The translations under genes were made by a program, and so were the position numbers. Positions 52,624 through 62,832 of a stretch of 64,000 nt of DNA are shown here, piece after piece. Source of the stretch: Cyanophora paradoxa CCMP329. Its lineage: Eukaryota; Plantae; Glaucophyta. The notes under the pieces are model-generated. The model was not told the origin of the DNA. It made no database searches and was given only the letters and a program-made list of their open reading frames with translations. The stretch spans positions 434,001 through 498,000 of the forward strand of contig QPMI01000535.1 in NCBI GenBank assembly GCA_004431415.1, written 5' to 3'. Each line of letters opens with the position of its first letter. Position 1 is the first letter of the stretch.

Positions 52624-55600
52624 ATGGCGGAGAAGGAGATCAAGCGCGAGTGGTGCGGTCGCGCCGTGTCCTCGACCCCTCGCGAATAGTTAACGGACTA
52701 GCGCGCCGAGCGCTCCGCTAGCACAGACACCCGAATTGGCTCTCTTTCAGCGGCGAATGACTATCTTTGCAGGTCCTTTGGCCACCGCTTGAAGCTCAGC
52801 AGGCAGAAGACGAGCGAGCGCCGTGCGGTCGAGGATCAGGAGCGGGGGCGCGAATATAATGAAAAAGAGACGCGCTTCGTCTCGCATGTGCGTTTTCCCG
52901 GCTGCGTGCGCGGGCCGCGTGGCTGCGGCGCGAGCTAGCCCCTTCGCATGGGTTGCCGCTTTCGCAGGCTACAGCTAGAGCTATCCAGCCCTCGCAGCTA
53001 AGAGCGGGTTCGCGTATGCTAGGGCGCGCAAGCGGCTCACGTCTACGGGGCCCCGCGCAGTACAAGTTGGTCAAGGATCTCTGGCAGAACCTCGTGACCT
53101 GGATGGAGAACACGAAGGTCGTGTACAGCTCGGGCATCAAAGTCTCTGAGGGCTTCGCGGACGCCGTCGGCAGCGGTGCGCGCTACGCGCTCGCAATATT
53201 AATCTTCTTTCCTGCCTCGCCGCTGGACGCCGGCTGCGCAGGGGAGGGGAAGGAGAAGAAGGACGCAGTCTCGCAGTCGGCGTCGCGGTGGTTCAAGGCG
53301 AACCAGGCGATGAACCAGGAGCGGGAGGCGCACGAGGAGACGCTCCGCAAGCGCGTGCTGGAGCCTCTCTCTGAGTACCTGAAGAGCCTGAAGCTGGTGA
53401 AGGACCGCCGCGCCGAGCGCGACGCCCTCCTCCGCAACTACGCGTACTACGCGAACAAGGCCCGCCCGCCCTCCCTCCCCCCCTCGTTCTCTTTCTTCCT
53501 CTTTCTCTTTCTGAAGTCTCTTCGGCAGGTGCGGAAGTTGAAGGAAAAGCCCGACAAGGACCCCAGCGTCCTCCCCCGGGTACGCCGTTCCTCCCCTTCG
53601 CTCCAACCTTCCCCGCCCCCCCCCTCCCCCCTTCCCCGGCCAAACCGGCCTGGGCTCCGCAGAACGAGAGCAAGATGGGCGTCGCGAAGGAGCTGTGCGC
53701 TGTGCTTGTACCCCCCCTCACGTCCCTCGCCAAACCCCGTACCCCCGACAGGTACGAGCGGCTGAACGGGGAGCTCATCGCCTTCTACGACCAGGTCCAC
53801 GCCCAGCGCGTCGCCTTCCTCTCCCCCCTCCTCTACGAGGTACCCCCCGCCTCCTCCTTCCCCCCTCCTCCCGCCTGCTCACCCCCGGAGGACAGGCGAT
53901 CAAGGTGCAGAACGACGTGGGGAAGGCGTACACGACGAAGATGAACGACGTCGCCAAGATCCTCGAGAAGCCCGCCGTGCGCCCAGCCCCGCCCCGCCCC
54001 CGAAATCCTTCCCGAGAGATAGATAGCCGGGTAGCCTAGAGCTAGGCCGGCCGCCGACTCGGCCGCTGCGCCCCGCCCCGGCGCCCCGCCGTGACTTTCC
54101 TGGAGGAGACGAGAGGAGGCGGGGCTTGAGTCGCGCGCAGGAGAACGGCTTCGACCTGAAGGCCAAGGTCAAGCCCCTGAAAGTGCCGGTGCGCCGCGCG
54201 TGGCCGGGCCGGCTCGGGGGTACGGGCCGACGGGGCCGGGGTACGGTGCCGGGGGCAGGAGGAGTACGCGGTGCTGAAGCGGGGCCTGCGGGACGCGAAA
54301 TCGCCCAAGTCGCCGGGCAGCTGGGGCGAAGGCTCCGACGCCGACCTCGACCCCGAGGCCAGCGGCGTGCGCCCCCTCTTCCTTTCCTTTCCTTTTCCTT
54401 TCCTTTTCTCTTCGTTCTGACGGGGCGCGCGCAGTCCGGGCTGGAGTCCCCCGGCTCGGGCGACGGCAAGGGGAAGAAGGGGAAGAAGACACCAAAGAAG
54501 AAGAAGGAGAAGGGGGAGAAGGGCGCGGGGGCGGCCTCCGGCTCGGAGGGCGAGGAGGCCGCCGCGGCGAGCGGCAGCGGGGCGGAGGAGGGGGAGGAGG
54601 AGGACGGCTCGGACGGCGGCGGCGCCAAGGCGGACAAGGCGAAGAAGAAGGGGAAGGGGAAGGGGCGCGCCGGGAGCGCGCCGGCCGTGCTGCCCCTCCA
54701 GCCGCTCCAGCCGCTCCCGCTCCAGCCGCTGCAGGCCCTCCAGCCGATGCAGCCGTTGCAGGCGATGCAGGCGGGGCCGGCGGCCCCGCCCTCCTCTGCC
54801 TTCGCCAACTGGGGCGCCTTCGACGCGGCCCTGGCGATGGGCGCGCCCCACGGCGCCCCGGGGGCGCCCCACGCCGCGCACCCCGCCGCCCCTTGGTCCG
54901 CCGGCTACCCCCAGCAGCAGCAGCAGCAGCAGCAGCCGCAGCAGCCGCAGCAGCAGCAGGCGCCGGCCGCCTCGCCATGGGGCGGCGCCTCGGACGGGAA
55001 CCCGTTCGCGGCGGGGCCGGAGCAGAATCACCACCAGCAGCAGCAGCAGGCGCCGGCGTCGGCGCCGGCGCACCACCAGGCCTTCCCGCACCACGCGCCC
55101 CTCCAGCCGACCACCTCTGGACCCGCCTTCTTCGGTCAGCAGCCGCCGCAGCAGCCGCAGCAGCAGCAGCAGCAGTCAGCCGCCCCGCAGTGGCCCCACG
55201 GGCCCCCGCACGCCCCGTACCCCGCCCCGGCCCCCGCACCCGCCCCTGCCCACGCAGCCGCCCCTGGTTCCGCCTACCCCTCTGCGCCCCTCTCGCCGTC
55301 CGGGGCCGGCGCCGGTGGCCCGCACTGGCCAGCGTCCCCGTCCGCTGCCGCCCCGCCCGCCGCCCCTCCGGCCCCGCCGGCCCCGCCCCGCCTCCCGCCG
55401 CCCCGCCGCCCCGCCGAGCGCGCCCAGGTCAACTTCGCCTTTGTCGGTACGCACTTTTCCACCCGCCGCTGCGTCGTCGCCTCATCTGAGTCTGGGCCTC
55501 AGCTGAGCACGACAACGAGCTCTCCATCGCCGTGGGGGAGGTCATTTCGGTCCTCAAGAAGGACGGCGGCTGGTGGGAGGGTGCGCACGAAGGCTCCCCC

Positions 55601-55720
55601 CCCCCCCCCCCCCCCCCTTCCCCTCAGTTTTCGTCGCCGCTCACTGGAATCCCGGGCGCAGGCGAGTTGAACGGCCGCAGGGGCCTCTTCCCCTCGAACT
55701 ACGTCTCCCTTCTTGCCTGA
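52624..55720 (+). CDS. BAR + SH3 protein (amphiphysin/Rvs167-like)
   Basis: BAR helices ([26 protein letters not shown]|V.KLKEK...YERLNGEL), an NPF motif and SH3 [27 protein letters not shown]|[14 protein letters not shown]. Confidence 0.9.
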
Positions 55721-55952: not shown

Positions 55953-57408
55953 TCACGCGCGGGCGAGAGAGGAAGCGGAGACAGAGGAGAGGGCGCCCCC
56001 CGGGGAGTAGGAGAGGAGGGCAAGCTGGAGGAGGGTACGTGATTCGAGCCAAAGGAAGGCTATGCGGAAGCCGGCGGGGCCGGGGGCGCGGGCGGCGAGG
56101 GGGTACAGCGCCGCGCAGCTCCACGGCAGAAGGGCGAGGGCGTGGGGGGGTAGGGGGAAGGCGGAGCAGGAGGGCTCGGGAAGGGATGCGAGCGTGGGAC
56201 GGGTACCGGAGCCGCCGACGCCGCCGGCAGCCTCAAAGAGAGCAGAGCCGTCCGCAGCGACGAGCCGGACCTGGGGGGGTACATGACCTCGGGGGTCAGG
56301 GGCTGCGAGGCCTGCAAAGCAGCGATCGCGGGGACCTTCAGATGCGAGTCGGAAGCTTCGAAGGATGCGCGCGCAACCTCGCCGGCTGCAGCGCGGGCGA
56401 CGGCCCGGCGGGGTCGGAGGGGCAAGCAAAGCGCGCTGCAGGGCGGGGTACGGGGCCGCACGGGAGCCTGGCGCAGCACTCCACTCGCCCGCCAGCGCGG
56501 CCGGGGCGAGCGGTGCAGACTCGGCGCTGGAGGGGGGGAGAAGGCGGGTAAGGTGGCAGCGCAAGCCAAAGCGAGGGCGGCGGGGCTCGAAGCCTCGAAC
56601 CTGTGGTAGAAGTCCTCGTCGCGGTCGACGGCGTTGGCGGCGGCGGCGAGGTTCGCGTCGGCGCGGCGCTGCTCGATGAAGAGGTCCACGCCACTCACGC
56701 GGTCCTCGTAGTCGCTCCGCACCACCGCTCGCATCTGCCAGCGCCGCGCGGCTCTCGCTGAGTCAGCCGGGCGCACGCGGAACGCCGCGCGGAGCGGGGC
56801 GGGCCGGGGTGGGCCGGCGGCCCTCACTGACCCGGCGCTGGCGGCAGGAGGACATGAGGGAGCACTCGGCGCGGAACGGCGCGTCTCCGTTGCCCACCGC
56901 CGAGTCCGGGCACCAGACGTACGGCCCGCCGGGCAGCGGCCGCAGGCCCGGCGGCGGGGCGCCCCACGGGTACGACACGGCATCCCGATCCAGCGACTGC
57001 ATAGAACGTCCGACGGTCAGCGCCGCGACCGCGAGCATCAGCCACGCTGGGCCGCCGGGCTCGAAAGCGCACGGCGAGCGCGCGCATCCTATCATTCATT
57101 CGGCGGCCGCGCCGTTCTCCGCCCAGCCCGCTTAGCTAAAGAGCTCTAAGCGGCCTTTCGAGTGCGCGCACCTCGTCCAGGTTGCAGCCAACGCTCGGCT
57201 GGAAGCGCTGCAGAGCGATTTCGAGCGCGGGCTCGCCCACGCGGACCTCGCGAACGTCGCAGAAGGTCGGCAGCGTCGTGAGCCGCTTGCCCCACTGCGC
57301 GAAGGCCTCGGGCGCGTTGGGGAAATCCTGCACGTCGCCGCGCGAGTCGACGCGGCCGAGGAAACCCTCCCAGCGCCCGAGATTCGGAAGGAAGTCCTCC
57401 CACGCCAT
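55953..57408 (-). CDS. DUF3598-like protein (cyanobacterial/plastid family)
   Basis: MAWEDFLPNLGRWEGFL resembles the W.....NLG.W.G start of the family. Also FRAECSL...RR|MRAVVRSDY...VDLFIE and C-terminal FRIAFLWL...SYSPGG. Recognised from memory. Confidence 0.65.
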
Positions 57409-57639: not shown

Positions 57640-60600
57640 ATGCCGCCCCGGGCCCGGCTCGGAGGCTCCAGAGTCGGAGACGGTCCCGTTTCACACAAGG
57701 GACCGTCTTTGCTCGCTGGCGTCGTCGTCCTCCTTGTGTTCGCGACGATCCCTCTGGCGACCCCTGCGGCCGCGGCGCCCGTCAGCGGGAACGCCATTCG
57801 TATCGCCCGCTCCGAGGGCATGACCGTGAGGATCAACATCACATGGTTCGGAGCCCGCGGCGTTCGATGCTAGAACCACATCCGGGCGGAGCCGCCCTCG
57901 GCCGGCCCGGAGCCTAACGGTGGCGCAGGATGTCACCTCCGAGCCTCGTGCGGGTGGCGCTTCGCGTGTGTTTCACCGAACGGTGGAACGACGAGCGGGC
58001 GCAGGAGATCGTCGTCGCGGAGAGCGCGCAGCTCTGCTACCCGGTGCTCTTGCAGCGCGCCTGCATCGAGCGCGTCGGCTTTTGTCGCTCTTAACGCCGG
58101 GGCTTGCGCAGTGGATCGTCAACGTCCTCGCGAGGCAGCGGTACCTGCAGCTGCAGCTCGTGAACGTGCGCCCCGGAGGCTCCACGCCGCCCCGCACCCC
58201 CGGCCGCGCAGCTGACGCGCGGCTGGCCGGCCGGGCGCTCGCGCGCGCGCAGCTGCCCATCGGGATGTACGGCGTGCGGGCGAATGACACGCGGCTTGTG
58301 TTCATCGATCAGTTCTTCTCGGTGACGCCTGCGGCGCTCTGCAACGGTCTGGGCGGCAGCTTCGACTGCACCGCGGGCGTCAGCTACATCGGCGAGCGGC
58401 CCTCGGGGCTTCTCCCGCCGAGCACCGTTGAGCTCCGTGCGCCCGCCCGCCCCGCCCCGCCCCGCCCGCCCCGCCCCGCCCGTCCCGACGCGGGCCCCCC
58501 GCGGCGCCGCGCAGTGCCGGACCGTCTGGCGAGGGTGGATGAGGGCGCGGCGGCGGCCGGGCCGGACTCGCCGGGCCTGCTGCCCGAACCGGGCCCGCCG
58601 CAGACCGTGGTGGTCACGCAGGGCGTCCCCACGGCGGCCGTCATCGGCGCGGCGGCCGGCGGCGCGGCCGTCGCGGCGGTGGCGGTCGGCTGCTGCGCCT
58701 TCTGCTACATACAGCGGCGCCGCAAGCAGCGGCGGAGCACGACCGTGCGGGTCGTCTTCGACGACTCGGGCCGCGAGAGTGCGCCCCGCCCCGGCAGGGG
58801 GGCGCGGGGCGGGGCCGGGCCTGCAGGGGCTCAGCTGTAGCCCGCCTCCGTCGCCCCCGCCCCGCTCTGCTCTGCGTTGCTCCGCTGCGCGGCCGCTGAT
58901 GCGATCGGGGCCGGCAGTGATCCGCATCGAGGGCGGGCCGCAGACCGTCGACGGCGCCTCGCCCATCTCCGTCACGCCTGTGCGCCCCCGCCCCCCCGCC
59001 CCCGCCGCCGGCCCGTAGCCTCACCGAGCGCGCCGCCGCCGCGCCGCCGCGCAGGACGGCCAGCTCGTCATCCGCACGAACGCGCGGGCCCAGGTCCCGG
59101 CCCCGGCCCCACCCGCCGGCGGGGCGCCCGCGGCCGGCCCCTCCCGTCGGGGCACCAACCCCACGGAGCCGGCGCCGCGCAGCCCCGCGCCCTCCTTCCC
59201 CCGCTCCGCCTCCGCCCCCGGCCTCCAGCAGCTGCAGCAGCTGCAGGGGCAGGGCCAGGGGGGGTACATGGAGCTCCCGTCGGCCTCGTCGGTCGACTCG
59301 ACCGCACAGGCGCCGTCCCCGGCCGCCGGCGGCGGGCGGACGAGCCGGCCCCGCGCGCCGGCGGCCCCAAGCGCTCGCCGAGCGTCGCCGGCCCCGCCGC
59401 CGCCGTCGGCCGCTTCTCCGCGAGCTTCCTCCCCTCCCCCGACTCCTCCGCCTTCCAGCGGTGCGCCGTACCCCCCTCGTCTGCCTCCCCACCCCCCTCC
59501 GCCTCGGTGCGACGGGGCGGGGGCGGGACAGGGCGATCTGCACGAAGTGCGCGCGGGCGTGCGCGGGGGTACCGGACGAGGAGGAGGCCCTCGAGGCAGA
59601 GTGCCCCTCCTGCCGCCTACCCCTCGTCCGTTCCCCCCCCCCCCCCCACTTCCTCGGCTCCCGTCGCCGCCCCTGTGACCGCGCACCCCGCCGCCGCAGG
59701 TCATCAAGAAGCGCTTCTGGCCGGTGTCGCGCGTCGGCGGCGGCGAGTTCGGCACCGCTTTCGTGCGCCCCGCCGTCCCGCGCCGCGCGTCCGCCGCGCC
59801 CCGCCCCTTGGGCCCGAGACCTCATACCCCCTGCAGCTCGCCGTCGATCTGCACTACCCGTCCAGGCGCCAGTGCGTCGTGAAGAAGGTGCTCCGATGCT
59901 GTACCCCTGCGCCGCCCCAGACCCCTCCCCTCATTCCTGTACCCCCGCAGTTCACGTTCTTCGAGAAGAGCGGCAACGAGGAGCACATCGAGAAGGCCGC
60001 GGAGCTCTTCCTCGAGGAGGTGTACCCCTCTCGGGTGCTCGTACCCCCGGAAGGCTGACGCGGTACCCCCTCCCAGGGCCGCGTCCTGGAGAACCTCGAC
60101 CACCCCTGCGTGCCGAAGCTCCTCGGCTCGTTCCTCTGGCAGGCAAGGCCGTACCCCCTCTCGTCTCCGTACCCCTCTTGATTCGAATCCTCAGGGGGAC
60201 CTGTACAACGTGATGAACTTTGTACCCGGGCGCGACCTGCAGCGGATCATGAAGGACCGATCGGGGACGTACCCCGAGAGCGAGGCGAGGCGTACCCCGG
60301 GCCGGAGGGCCGTGCGGCCGCGCTCTGAATCCGCGCTCAGGTCTACCGCCTGCTGGACGACATGACCGACGCGCTCTCGTACGTGCACGCGCGGCGGATC
60401 CTGCACAGGTGCCGGGCCCCGCGTCGCGCTCGCCCTGGCGTGGCGCGGGGCGGCGCTGAGGGCGCCGCAGGGACGTCAAACCATCGAACATCATCGCCGG
60501 CGACGACGGTGCCCCGCCCGCCCCCCCACAGCCGCAGCCGCCGCCGCCGGCGCTCCTGACGGCGGCCGCAGGGGACTACTACCTCGTGGACTTCGGCCTC

Positions 60601-62832
60601 TCGACGACCTCGCGGCCCGACTGGGAGCAGGCCACCATGGCGCGGCCCGCCCCGCCCCGCCCCATCCCCCGCCCCTCACCCGCCGCCCGCAGATCGGCAC
60701 CTACGCCTACAGCGACCCCGAGCAGCGGCGGGGGTACCCCACGCCCTCCTCGGACCTCTACAGGTGCCCCTAGCCCCCCCCCTCTCCCGTCCACGCGGGG
60801 CGCCGCCGACCTGGGGGCAGCCTGGCGGCGACGTGCGTGGAGCTGCTGACGCGGGCGCGCCCGACGTACGAGTACTTCTGCGACTGGACGCCCCGTCCGC
60901 CCCGCCCGCCGCGCCCCCGCACCCCGCCCCGCCCCTCCTCACGGGCGCCCCCGCAGCCGCGCGCCTCCCGATCTCCTCCCACCTCGCCTCAGTCCTCTCT
61001 CGCATGCTGCGGAGGGACCCCGCGCAGCGGTGCGGCGCGCCGGCCCCGCCTCTCAACTTCTTTCCGCCCCTCTCACCCGCGCCGGCGCAGGTTCGAATCC
61101 GCCGCGGCCGCCCGAGAAGCTCTCTTCGGGCGCGACTGCAGGCGGAGGAGGAGCGTACCCCCCCAGCACCTCGCGGCCCCCGACTCGCCGGCGAACGCGC
61201 CCCTCCGCCCCGCCTCCTCCGCCCCGCCTGCCGCCCTGCTGCCGCCCAAGGGGGACGACGGGGGGTACCCGAACGGCGACGAGGCGTTCTACGTGATGCC
61301 CCCCGGCACGGGCCCCCGCCAGGCCTCCTCCGCCCCCTCCCACGTACCCCCCCGTGCCTACGTCCTCCGCACCGTCAGCACGCCCCGCTCCGGTACCCCT
61401 CGGGGCGCCCCCGCCCCCTCCGAACCGGGCGCTCCCACCGGGGGCCCGGGACCGCCCGCCTCCGCCACGCCGCGGGGCGCTGGCCCCGCCCCCGCCCCCG
61501 CCGCCCCTCCCCCCGCCCTGCCCCCCAGGCCGCCCTCCCCCCGCCCCCTCCGCCGGCGCCACCCGCGGCTCCCCCGCCCCCCTCCTCTGCAACCCCACGC
61601 GTGGCGGCCCTCCCCCGCCCCGCCCTCCTCCACCCCGCGGGTCCCCGCCGCCGCCCAGCCCGCCCCCGCGCCCCCGCCCCGCCGCCGCCGCCGCCGGCCG
61701 CCCCACCGCCTCCCCCGCTCCCCCGCCTCCGCCCGCCGGGCCCTCGCCGCCGACCTCGGGGCCGCTGCCGCAGCCGGCGACGCCGCGGCCGGGCTCGGGC
61801 CCGCTGCGGGAGGCCTCGCCCGGGGCCTCCTCCTCGGCGCTCTCCTCGTCGCTGCGCTCCTCGGAGCGCCGCGAGGAGCGCTCGGTGATCTGGGACCTCC
61901 TCTCCACCGCCTCGCGCCTCGCCGCCGGCTTCGACGGCGAGGCGCCCACGTCCCCCGAGGGCACCCTCCAGACCGCCTCCTCCGCCCCCTCCTCCCGCCC
62001 CCTCGCCCCCCTCCTCCGCCGCACCCGTGCGCGCTGCGGAGCGCGCAGCCGCCCGCTGCCTTCGTTTGTCTGACGGGGGCGGGCGGGGCGGGGCGGCAGA
62101 GACGATGAAGGGCGGGCCGCGCGGGAAGGGCCGGCGGCCGCGCCCGGGGCCCGCGAGCGCCTCGGCGCCCAGCAGCCCAACGCGGCGCCGCGGCGGAGAT
62201 CGGGCGGCGGCCGGCGGCGAGCAGGCGCGGGGGCGGGAGCGGGGCCGGGAGAGGCAGGGGGCGCGGGAGGGGCAGGGGCCAGGGGCGGGGCGCAGGCGGG
62301 GGCGCCGAGCGGGGAGGGCCGGAGCAGCGCGAGCCGCAGCTCCGCGAGCGACCGGACGGCCCACGGCGGCAGCGACAGCGGCGAGGTGCCCCGCCCCTCC
62401 TCTCTCTGCCCCGCGCCCCGCCCCGCCACTGACGCCGCGCCAGCCGCAGCGGGGCCTGCGGCTGCCGCGGAGCGGGCGGCTGCCGAGCAGCGAGGGAGCA
62501 GCAGCGGCGAGGGCGTCGCGGCGGCGCTGCACCGGTGGGCGACCCGGCGCCGCAACCACGCCGCCCGGAAGCGCAAGGAGGGCCCCGCTGCCGCCCCCCA
62601 GGGGCCGCCCGCCCCCTCGGCGCCCGCCGCCTCCTCCGCCCCGCCCGCCGGTGCCCCCGAGGCACCTCAAGCGGGGGGCACGGACGCCGCCGCGGGGGCG
62701 GCGCCCTCCTCCGCGCGATCGGAGGGCCTCGGCGGCTCGTCGCGATCAGTCCCCGGAGCCTCCGAGGCGGGCGGAAACCCGGCCGCCGGCCCCTCCCGCA
62801 AGCCCTCGAGCGCTTCCCTGCACTCCCACTAG
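57640..62832 (+). CDS. Single-pass receptor-like Ser/Thr kinase with a cyanobacterial-type 4-Cys prefix kinase domain
   Basis: Signal peptide (LLAGVVVLLVFATIPLATPAAAA), ectodomain, TM followed by RRRKQRR, CTKC...CPSC, then GGGEFG, VVKK, HRDVKPSN, DFG, GTYAYSDPE and SDLYSL. Low-complexity tail. Confidence 0.85.

Follow-up and report, generated by a model that had tools for sequence, protein, structure and literature searches.

The region analysed here (the window) is a 64,000-nucleotide stretch of the Cyanophora paradoxa CCMP329 genome (Glaucophyta; assembly GCA_004431415.1, contig QPMI01000535.1, positions 434,001 to 498,000 of the forward strand). Near its end lies the gene g17581, which, when spliced by hand, gives one open frame for a predicted single-pass membrane protein with a Ser/Thr kinase domain on its cytoplasmic side. 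Here, we describe the layout of this gene, the RNA evidence for it, its paralogues and the origin of its kinase. Positions below are those of the window.

Layout of the gene

57640..57774 (+): predicted signal peptide (aa 1-45), with a basic n-region, a hydrophobic h-region and an AAA cleavage context
57775..58624 (+): ectodomain and stalk (aa 46-223; exons 1-5, introns 1-4); core aa 46-190 modelled, at low confidence, as a beta sandwich; four Cys (83, 105, 155, 164) and sequons at N66 and N136
58628..58711 (+): predicted transmembrane (TM) helix (aa 225-252), with a GxxxG motif and a Cys at its cytosolic end
58715..58735 (+): basic stop-transfer motif RRRKQRR (aa 254-260)
58736..59532 (+): juxtamembrane segment and Pro/Ala/Gln-rich linker (exons 5-7, introns 5-7)
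59333..59334 (+): site of one G missing from the reference relative to RNA contigs of three runs (probable assembly slip); no intron here
59539..59613 (+): Cys-rich prefix CxxC-x17-CxxC (aa 434-458), a putative zinc ribbon and divergent homologue of the cyanobacterial 4-Cys kinase prefix
59715..61130 (+): Hanks-type Ser/Thr kinase domain (aa 468-719; exons 9-20), RD type
60143..60194 (+): GC-AG intron 12 (RNA joint 60139-60192)
60285..60340 (+): GC-AG intron 13 (RNA joint 60282-60339)
60640..60692 (+): GC-AG intron 16 (RNA joint 60638-60692)
61131..62050 (+): low-complexity Pro-rich C-terminal tail; RNA covers 61091-61330 and 61747-61971, and the model is resolved to about 61330

The kinase domain carries all of the catalytic motifs, namely GGGEFG, VVKK, the helix-C Glu, HRDVKPSN, DFG, GTYAYSDPE, SDLYSL and RFES, and it matches the Pkinase profile at 116.5 bits, above the cutoff and above its score against PK_Tyr_Ser-Thr. 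A plastid transit peptide was considered for the leader and rejected, because the leader has a hydrophobic h-region and lacks the N-terminal Phe motif of glaucophyte transit peptides. A hydrophobic stretch in the tail (aa 944-971 of a direct read) is probably out of frame and was disregarded. Profile scans with Pfam, exon by exon, were uninformative because the exons are short, and a two-exon piece found nothing in plasmids or in a word-indexed protein search.

RNA evidence for the spliced frame

RNA-type contigs from three runs of two studies support the spliced model. They show introns 1-4, 7-9 and 11-17 directly, as joints or pieces, and their lengths fit the model across introns 5, 6, 10, 18 and 19. 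The TM part and the kinase lie on overlapping spliced contigs in one frame, running from the signal peptide to the kinase, although this continuity rests on overlaps and not on a single long read. A sequence-only reading of the locus had listed the same elements, and its observation is confirmed: every one of them is present in the spliced frame.

Three points of that reading can now be corrected or extended. First, it required either a GC-AG intron at about 59310-59371 or a small indel to carry the frame through the linker. The intron does not exist; contigs run straight through 59088-59459 with one extra G behind 59333, and so the indel is the right alternative. The genome as given hits a stop at codon 498, while with the G the frame reads through. 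Second, the prefix plus kinase carries 12 introns, where about 11 had been proposed, and three of them are of the GC-AG type, all three shown in RNA. Third, the gene belongs to a family of at least four members, which could not be seen from the one locus.

The paralogues and the ectodomain

Three paralogues, g17554, g14986 and g4585 (the last with a probably truncated 5' model), share the ectodomain-TM-prefix-kinase layout. Using handles for the sequences compared, leaders similar to that of g17581 occur in paralogues P0008 and P0009, and the juxtamembrane motif is shared with P0009 and P0010. Cys83 and Cys105 have counterparts in the paralogues, and small-xxx-small TM motifs are kept. The ectodomains have diverged to 15-23% identity between subgroups while retaining their Trp, Cys and GxY scaffold, whereas the kinases remain 62-96% identical.

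The ectodomain (about 145 aa) could not be placed in any recognisable ligand-binding family. A search of 1.84 billion representative proteins found only the gene's own record; the other six hits are repeat-rich proteins that match low-complexity read-through intron sequence, and were rejected. A model built from the single sequence reached a pLDDT of only 35. A model from four sequences (pLDDT 55) gave a generic beta sandwich, with no significant match by Foldseek, VIA-align or the Atlas comparison (Z 7.1 at best, and none of 8 or more). The only lead is to the Kre9/KNH-like Ig domains of wall-associated proteins (PF10342), a feature score of 0.79 that is below the trusted score and was seen for paralogue P0009 only, with no Pfam hit.

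Perhaps, then, the protein is not a ligand-regulated receptor but a membrane-tethered kinase, constitutive or stress-regulated, whose small outer domain serves for sorting, adhesion or anchoring in the cell cover. The lack of a recognisable ligand-binding family, the Kre9/KNH-like lead and the disordered linker of about 180 aa that separates TM and kinase would be consistent with this view, which accepts the same cyanobacterial origin and topology. However, rapid divergence of ectodomains on a retained scaffold, beside well-conserved kinases, is the pattern of receptor families with different ligands, and the conserved TM motifs also argue against the alternative, which we consider unlikely.

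Relationship of the kinase to cyanobacterial Pkn2-type kinases

The sequence-only reading proposed an endosymbiont- or HGT-derived kinase of the cyanobacterial Pkn2 family, placed behind a host signal peptide, ectodomain and TM in an order the reverse of the bacterial one; it would have been contradicted by separate transcripts or by a kinase grouping with NEK, CAMK or TKL. This interpretation is supported, with the qualifications given below. The best non-self hits are 4-Cys-prefix kinases, cyanobacterial wherever an organism is named, at 150-166 bits and only 35-39% identity, compared to 85 bits for the best eukaryotic kinase in PDB. Maximum likelihood trees built without the prefix place the family inside a cyanobacterial clade with bootstrap support of 98/98, 100/97 and 98/98, and with a long-loop (YCTRP-type) group of Pkn2 kinases (L171; putatively Synechocystis SpkF-like) at 94/94, 99/91 and 96/89. 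The kinase is not NEK-, CAMK- or TKL-like, and it lies far from the TKL-like proxies in the trees, so that it does not fall in the IRAK/Pelle group.

Other comparisons point in the same direction. Equal-size profiles score the kinase at 204 bits for cyanobacteria, 181 for other bacteria and 134 for eukaryote-type kinases, although the bacterial sequences had been collected by similarity to the query, which favours them in this test. Of the diagnostic columns, the kinase matches 10 of 33 cyanobacterial ones, 1 of 8 for other bacteria and 1 of 14 for eukaryote-type kinases. The signatures LAVD-x-PS-x-C-V-x-K and SDLYSLAATCVxLLT are shared with the prefix kinases of cyanobacteria, and the LAATCV motif is shared almost only with the long-loop group. 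The long-loop sister proteins come from metagenomes, and their cyanobacterial origin is inferred from tree position and from a DUF1824 neighbour.

The Cys prefix lies directly before subdomain I, as in the bacterial kinases, but is divergent and has an extra Cys. It is not hit by NCBIfam NF045510 (4Cys_prefix_kin, cutoff 24) in any of the four paralogues, and two long-loop relatives (P0132 and P0037) also miss that profile. A profile that we built from 49 bacterial prefixes scores the four Cyanophora prefixes at 9-17 bits, above 499-500 of 500 shuffles each, and the form NPGC-x10-CxxC is found in P0009 and P0010.

Could the kinase instead be a fast-evolving eukaryotic or non-cyanobacterial kinase, drawn to cyanobacteria by sampling or long-branch effects, with a Cys prefix that is a chance resemblance? 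AU tests did not reject a clade of Cyanophora plus eukaryote-type kinases (p 0.09 and 0.13). The eukaryote-type proxies in these tests were giant-virus kinases, and the Cyanophora stem is long (1.2-1.4 changes per site). The modest identity to bacterial hits, the missed NF045510 profile and the gap of only about 23 bits to other bacteria would also fit this view. On the other hand, it is difficult to reconcile with the gap of about 80 bits to all PDB eukaryotic kinases, the several nested and well-supported branches in three trees, and the prefix similarity, which is independent of the tree columns and in the same position. We regard this explanation as improbable.

Domain order and related systems

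In the cyanobacterial 4-Cys-prefix kinases the prefix and kinase form the N-terminus, with any TM and sensor behind them. In g17581 they lie behind a signal peptide, ectodomain, TM and long linker, with the TM at aa 225-252 preceding the kinase at aa 468, and are split by the 12 introns. Of 117 relatives at 100 bits or more, only 2 have a TM before the kinase, while 47 have it after.

These two exceptions are CHASE2-TM-kinases (L035 and L037), with an outer sensor before the TM and a C-terminal Pkn2-type kinase, showing that the sensor-first order is not foreign to cyanobacteria. One might therefore suppose that the whole sensor-TM-kinase layout was imported ready-made and gained only a signal peptide. 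Several observations argue against this. The CHASE2 kinases fall in a different clade (with L035 in one of the trees), lack the Cys prefix and introns, and carry a CHASE2 sensor followed by several TMs (PMC2176072); g17581 has no CHASE2 domain and does not belong to their clade. In addition, the long-loop sister group has the prefix at the N-terminus and TM or Peripla_BP_6 sensors behind the kinase, and the ectodomain has no bacterial relative among the 1.84 billion representatives searched. We consider ready-made import very unlikely.

The plant RLK/Pelle receptor-like kinases, of which seven are reported in C. paradoxa (PMC10868138), and the independently evolved receptor kinases of oomycetes and other lineages (PMC3268121) share with g17581 a signal peptide, an ectodomain, a single TM, a basic stop-transfer motif and a cytoplasmic Ser/Thr kinase, in a small family with fast-diverging ectodomains. 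They differ in that the kinase of g17581 is bacterial-type, not of the IRAK/Pelle or other TKL groups, has a Cys prefix, and is not accompanied by LRR, lectin or malectin domains. A bacterial kinase module was also put to use in eukaryotic signalling in the plant ethylene and cytokinin receptors and phytochromes, His-kinase receptors of bacterial, probably cyanobacterial, origin. Those largely kept the bacterial layout, while here a Ser/Thr kinase appears to have been rebuilt into a type I eukaryotic layout.

No other eukaryote appeared among the top hits of two protein searches, although sensitivity near 40% identity is patchy and absence elsewhere is therefore weak evidence. A metagenome scan with Cyanophora-specific motifs found no relative. 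Literature searches found no description of the family, and the supplements of the genome paper, in the incomplete form examined, do not list the four genes.

Origin and possible working of the family

The best explanation, in which we have fairly good confidence, is that g17581 encodes a type I single-pass receptor-type Ser/Thr kinase, one of at least four paralogues. What the data demonstrate is one spliced, expressed frame with signal peptide, ectodomain, TM, linker, Cys prefix and a kinase with intact motifs. They strongly indicate, in addition, that the prefix plus kinase came as one module from a cyanobacterial long-loop Pkn2 kinase, whether from the endosymbiont or by a later transfer. 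The subsequent history is inferred: the bacterial TM and sensor would have been lost, and the module fused behind a secretory-pathway ectodomain and TM of probably host origin. It would then have gained introns and duplicated, with the ectodomains diverging quickly while the kinase core of g17581 and g17554 was homogenised.

The working of the protein, including its location, ligand binding, zinc binding and kinase activity, is likewise inferred, from sequence alone. In this view, the protein enters the ER, is N-glycosylated and reaches the plasma membrane or an endomembrane. The predicted beta-sandwich ectodomain would bind an outside ligand, perhaps a glycan or a protein, the GxxxG helices would bring two chains together, and the kinases would trans-phosphorylate the activation-loop Thr. 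The cytosolic Cys prefix would bind zinc, as its CxxC pairs suggest, and pack on the N-lobe as a structural or redox-sensitive element.

A more far-reaching reading remains possible, but is tentative: that this is a functional, ligand-activated family of eukaryotic cell-surface receptor kinases built on a Ser/Thr kinase from the cyanobacterial ancestor of the plastid. It would represent an independent origin of receptor kinases from an endosymbiont gene, diversifying by ectodomain divergence with gene conversion of the kinase core.

Receptor kinases arose several times in eukaryotes (PMC3268121). The cases known to us were all built from eukaryotic kinase groups. The public model of g17581, which skips 18 linker residues to get round a one-base slip, is corrected by the present analysis. 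The Cyanophora family appears to use a bacterial Hanks-type kinase, with its bacterial Cys prefix kept, as the output of a type I receptor, a route separate from those of plants and animals. With four paralogues, two of which have nearly identical kinases but very different ectodomains, it offers a small, testable system for asking how a new receptor is put together. It would show that an endosymbiont or transferred gene was rebuilt for sensing the outside of the host cell rather than sent back to the plastid.

Identity and structure of the gene

The region is GC-rich with many short introns, in keeping with the published description of the genome as a GC-rich, intron-dense, PacBio-based and probably haploid assembly whose gene models need curation (PMC6704402). 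A protein search with exons 3-4 returned one real match, record P0001, which is EukProt Cyanophora paradoxa P018208, gene tig00021038_g17581. Database searches were made with individual exons or with the P0001 record, while a joined spliced model was built from coordinates only to check the reading frame and the lengths of the RNA contigs.

Twenty exons with canonical GT-AG or GC-AG ends give one frame, with the following elements in order:

aa 1-45, predicted signal peptide
ectodomain with Cys at aa 83, 105, 155 and 164 and sequons at aa 66 and 136
aa 225-252, TM
basic motif RRRKQRR
linker
aa 434-458, prefix CxxC-x17-CxxC
kinase domain with every catalytic motif

Pfam Pkinase scores 116.5 bits on P0001. 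The arrangement described in the sequence-only reading is therefore confirmed, apart from the intron that it had offered as one way through the linker (see below).

Transcript evidence

Contigs from three RNA-type runs belonging to two studies (their RNA status is a database guess, but they lack the introns) show introns 1-4, 7-9 and 11-17 directly. Their lengths fit the model across the remaining introns; for example, a 742-nt contig ends exactly where its last joint says it should. The ectodomain-TM contig of RNA-type run X1 reaches 59135, a contig of run X3 spans 59088-59441, and another X1 contig runs from 59263 into the kinase, such that the pieces overlap in one frame, even though no single contig or long read spans the whole mRNA. 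One contig of run X4, in the region 58918-59099, ends with a 15-nt rather than about 30-nt overlap with the next; this may reflect an assembly break or an alternative splice near intron 6.

All three RNA runs carry one extra G behind 59333 and show no intron in the linker. The small indel, which the sequence-only reading had given as the alternative to a GC-AG intron, thus accounts for the continuity of the frame: without the G the frame stops at codon 498, while with it the frame reads through the kinase. The likeliest cause, we infer, is an assembly slip in a G-rich stretch; the DNA run lists no contig across the site. The public gene model skips 18 residues here. The two models also part in the tail, where a GC-rich repeat stretch at 61330-61750 has no listed RNA contig. 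The public model uses an intron in this stretch and extends to 1188 aa, whereas a direct read stays in another frame, and either C-terminus must be regarded as provisional.

Two features were seen on the upstream side of the gene:

57136-57408 (minus strand), a head-to-head gene that starts about 230 bp upstream and is covered by RNA-type contigs; its N-terminus weakly resembles DUF3598 (E 0.27), a cyanobacterial and plant family
54126-55720, a Pro/Gln-rich gene that ends in what looks like an SH3 domain (motifs DGGWWEG and GLFPSNYV)

A family of four genes

Three paralogues, P0008 (g17554, on the same contig), P0009 (g14986) and P0010 (g4585), have the same ectodomain-TM-basic-linker-prefix-kinase order. 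P0008 and P0009 also have a signal-peptide-like leader, while the P0010 model seems to start inside the ectodomain. The ectodomains of P0001 and P0008 are homologous but only 21-26% identical. In contrast, their kinase lobes are 91% and 96% identical, while the prefix is 39% identical, lower than the 53% identity of the P0001 prefix to those of P0009 and P0010. DNA contigs of the second copy differ by only 8 in 196 and 5 in 122 letters, even across introns, and their coding changes match P0008, which is also transcribed. The kinase core (59837-61029) is thus nearly identical to that of g17554 at the DNA level, introns included, while the prefix and ectodomain are far apart. This points, by inference, to a probable gene-conversion tract, with recent conversion of the kinase core between two receptors that have different outer domains.

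Origin of the kinase

After the paralogues, the best single-domain hits of the kinase are 4-Cys-prefix kinases, cyanobacterial wherever an organism is named, at 150-166 bits. The best solved eukaryotic kinase, Aurora B, scores 85, and Stk1/StkP scores 81. Trees were built on the kinase domain alone, with the prefix cut off, and eukaryote-type kinases from giant-virus contigs served as outgroup only, in place of eukaryotic kinases. Three IQ-TREE runs put the four proteins inside a cyanobacterial clade (98/98, 100/97, 98/98) and with the long-loop YCTRP subgroup (94/94, 99/91, 96/89). Forcing the Cyanophora proteins together with the eukaryote-type kinases costs about 20.5 log-likelihood units, but this placement was not rejected (p-AU 0.09 and 0.13).

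Independent lines of evidence agree with the trees. Equal-size profiles score the kinase at 204 bits for cyanobacteria, 181 for other bacteria and 134 for eukaryote-type kinases, and the diagnostic columns matched are 10/33, 1/8 and 1/14, respectively. In addition, the LAATCV motif is shared almost only with the long-loop group. The long-loop proteins are metagenomic, and their cyanobacterial origin is inferred from the tree and from a DUF1824 neighbour, a cyanobacterial family. One metagenome locus (L089:391-6873) has three adjacent Ser/Thr kinase genes, two of them long-loop kinases with C-terminal Peripla_BP_6/ANF sensors, next to a VWA and solute-binding protein gene. A contig labelled Sulfitobacter (L002) carries a typical cyanobacterial 4-Cys-prefix kinase, probably through bin contamination or transfer.

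The Cys prefix and the order of domains

The family profile NF045510 hits five of six tested bacterial relatives but none of the four algal prefixes; it also misses two long-loop bacterial members. A profile made from 49 bacterial prefixes scores the algal prefixes at 9-17 bits, matched by 0-1 of 500 shuffles each. P0009 and P0010 keep NPGC-x10-CxxC, matching the bacterial NPxC-x10-12-CxxC. The prefix is therefore a diverged homologue, not a formal family member.

Of 117 relatives at 100 bits or more, 47 have a TM after the kinase and two have one before it. Those two are CHASE2-TM-kinases of another clade, without the prefix. Sensor-first order therefore exists in cyanobacteria, but not in the prefix-bearing relatives sampled here, and no bacterial relative of the algal ectodomain was found in the protein search. 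The fusion most likely happened in the eukaryote. The interpretation in the sequence-only reading, that a cyanobacterial-type kinase was placed behind a host signal peptide, ectodomain and TM, is supported, although the AU tests leave a grouping with eukaryote-type kinases possible.

The ectodomain of P0001 gave no Pfam or Atlas hit. A model built from four sequences (pLDDT 55) predicts a beta sandwich over about aa 50-145, with only generic structural matches (best Z 7.1). The paralogue P0009 gives a weak Atlas lead to Kre9/KNH Ig-like domains (0.79, below the trusted range).

Relation to other receptor kinases and a possible mechanism

Receptor kinases as such are familiar, and LRR receptor kinases alone arose at least four times (PMC3268121). 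C. paradoxa is also reported to have seven RLK/Pelle members (PMC10868138), to which this family does not belong. Within the limits of the literature searched, we found no paper describing a eukaryotic type I receptor built on a cyanobacterial Pkn2-type kinase. How did the kinase reach the alga? No ortholog turned up outside Cyanophora in our searches, and so endosymbiotic transfer with loss elsewhere and later horizontal transfer are both compatible with the data.

Expression, splicing, the elements of the topology and intact catalytic residues are shown by the analysis. The working of the protein, however, is inferred from established receptor-kinase and Hanks-kinase biology. In this view, the protein would enter the ER, be glycosylated and be displayed at the surface, where a putative ligand would drive pairing through GxxxG helices, followed by trans-phosphorylation of the activation-loop Thr of an RD kinase. 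The cytosolic prefix would bind zinc, and the Cys at the TM end may be S-acylated. The near-identical kinases of g17581 and g17554 would then link different inputs to one output.
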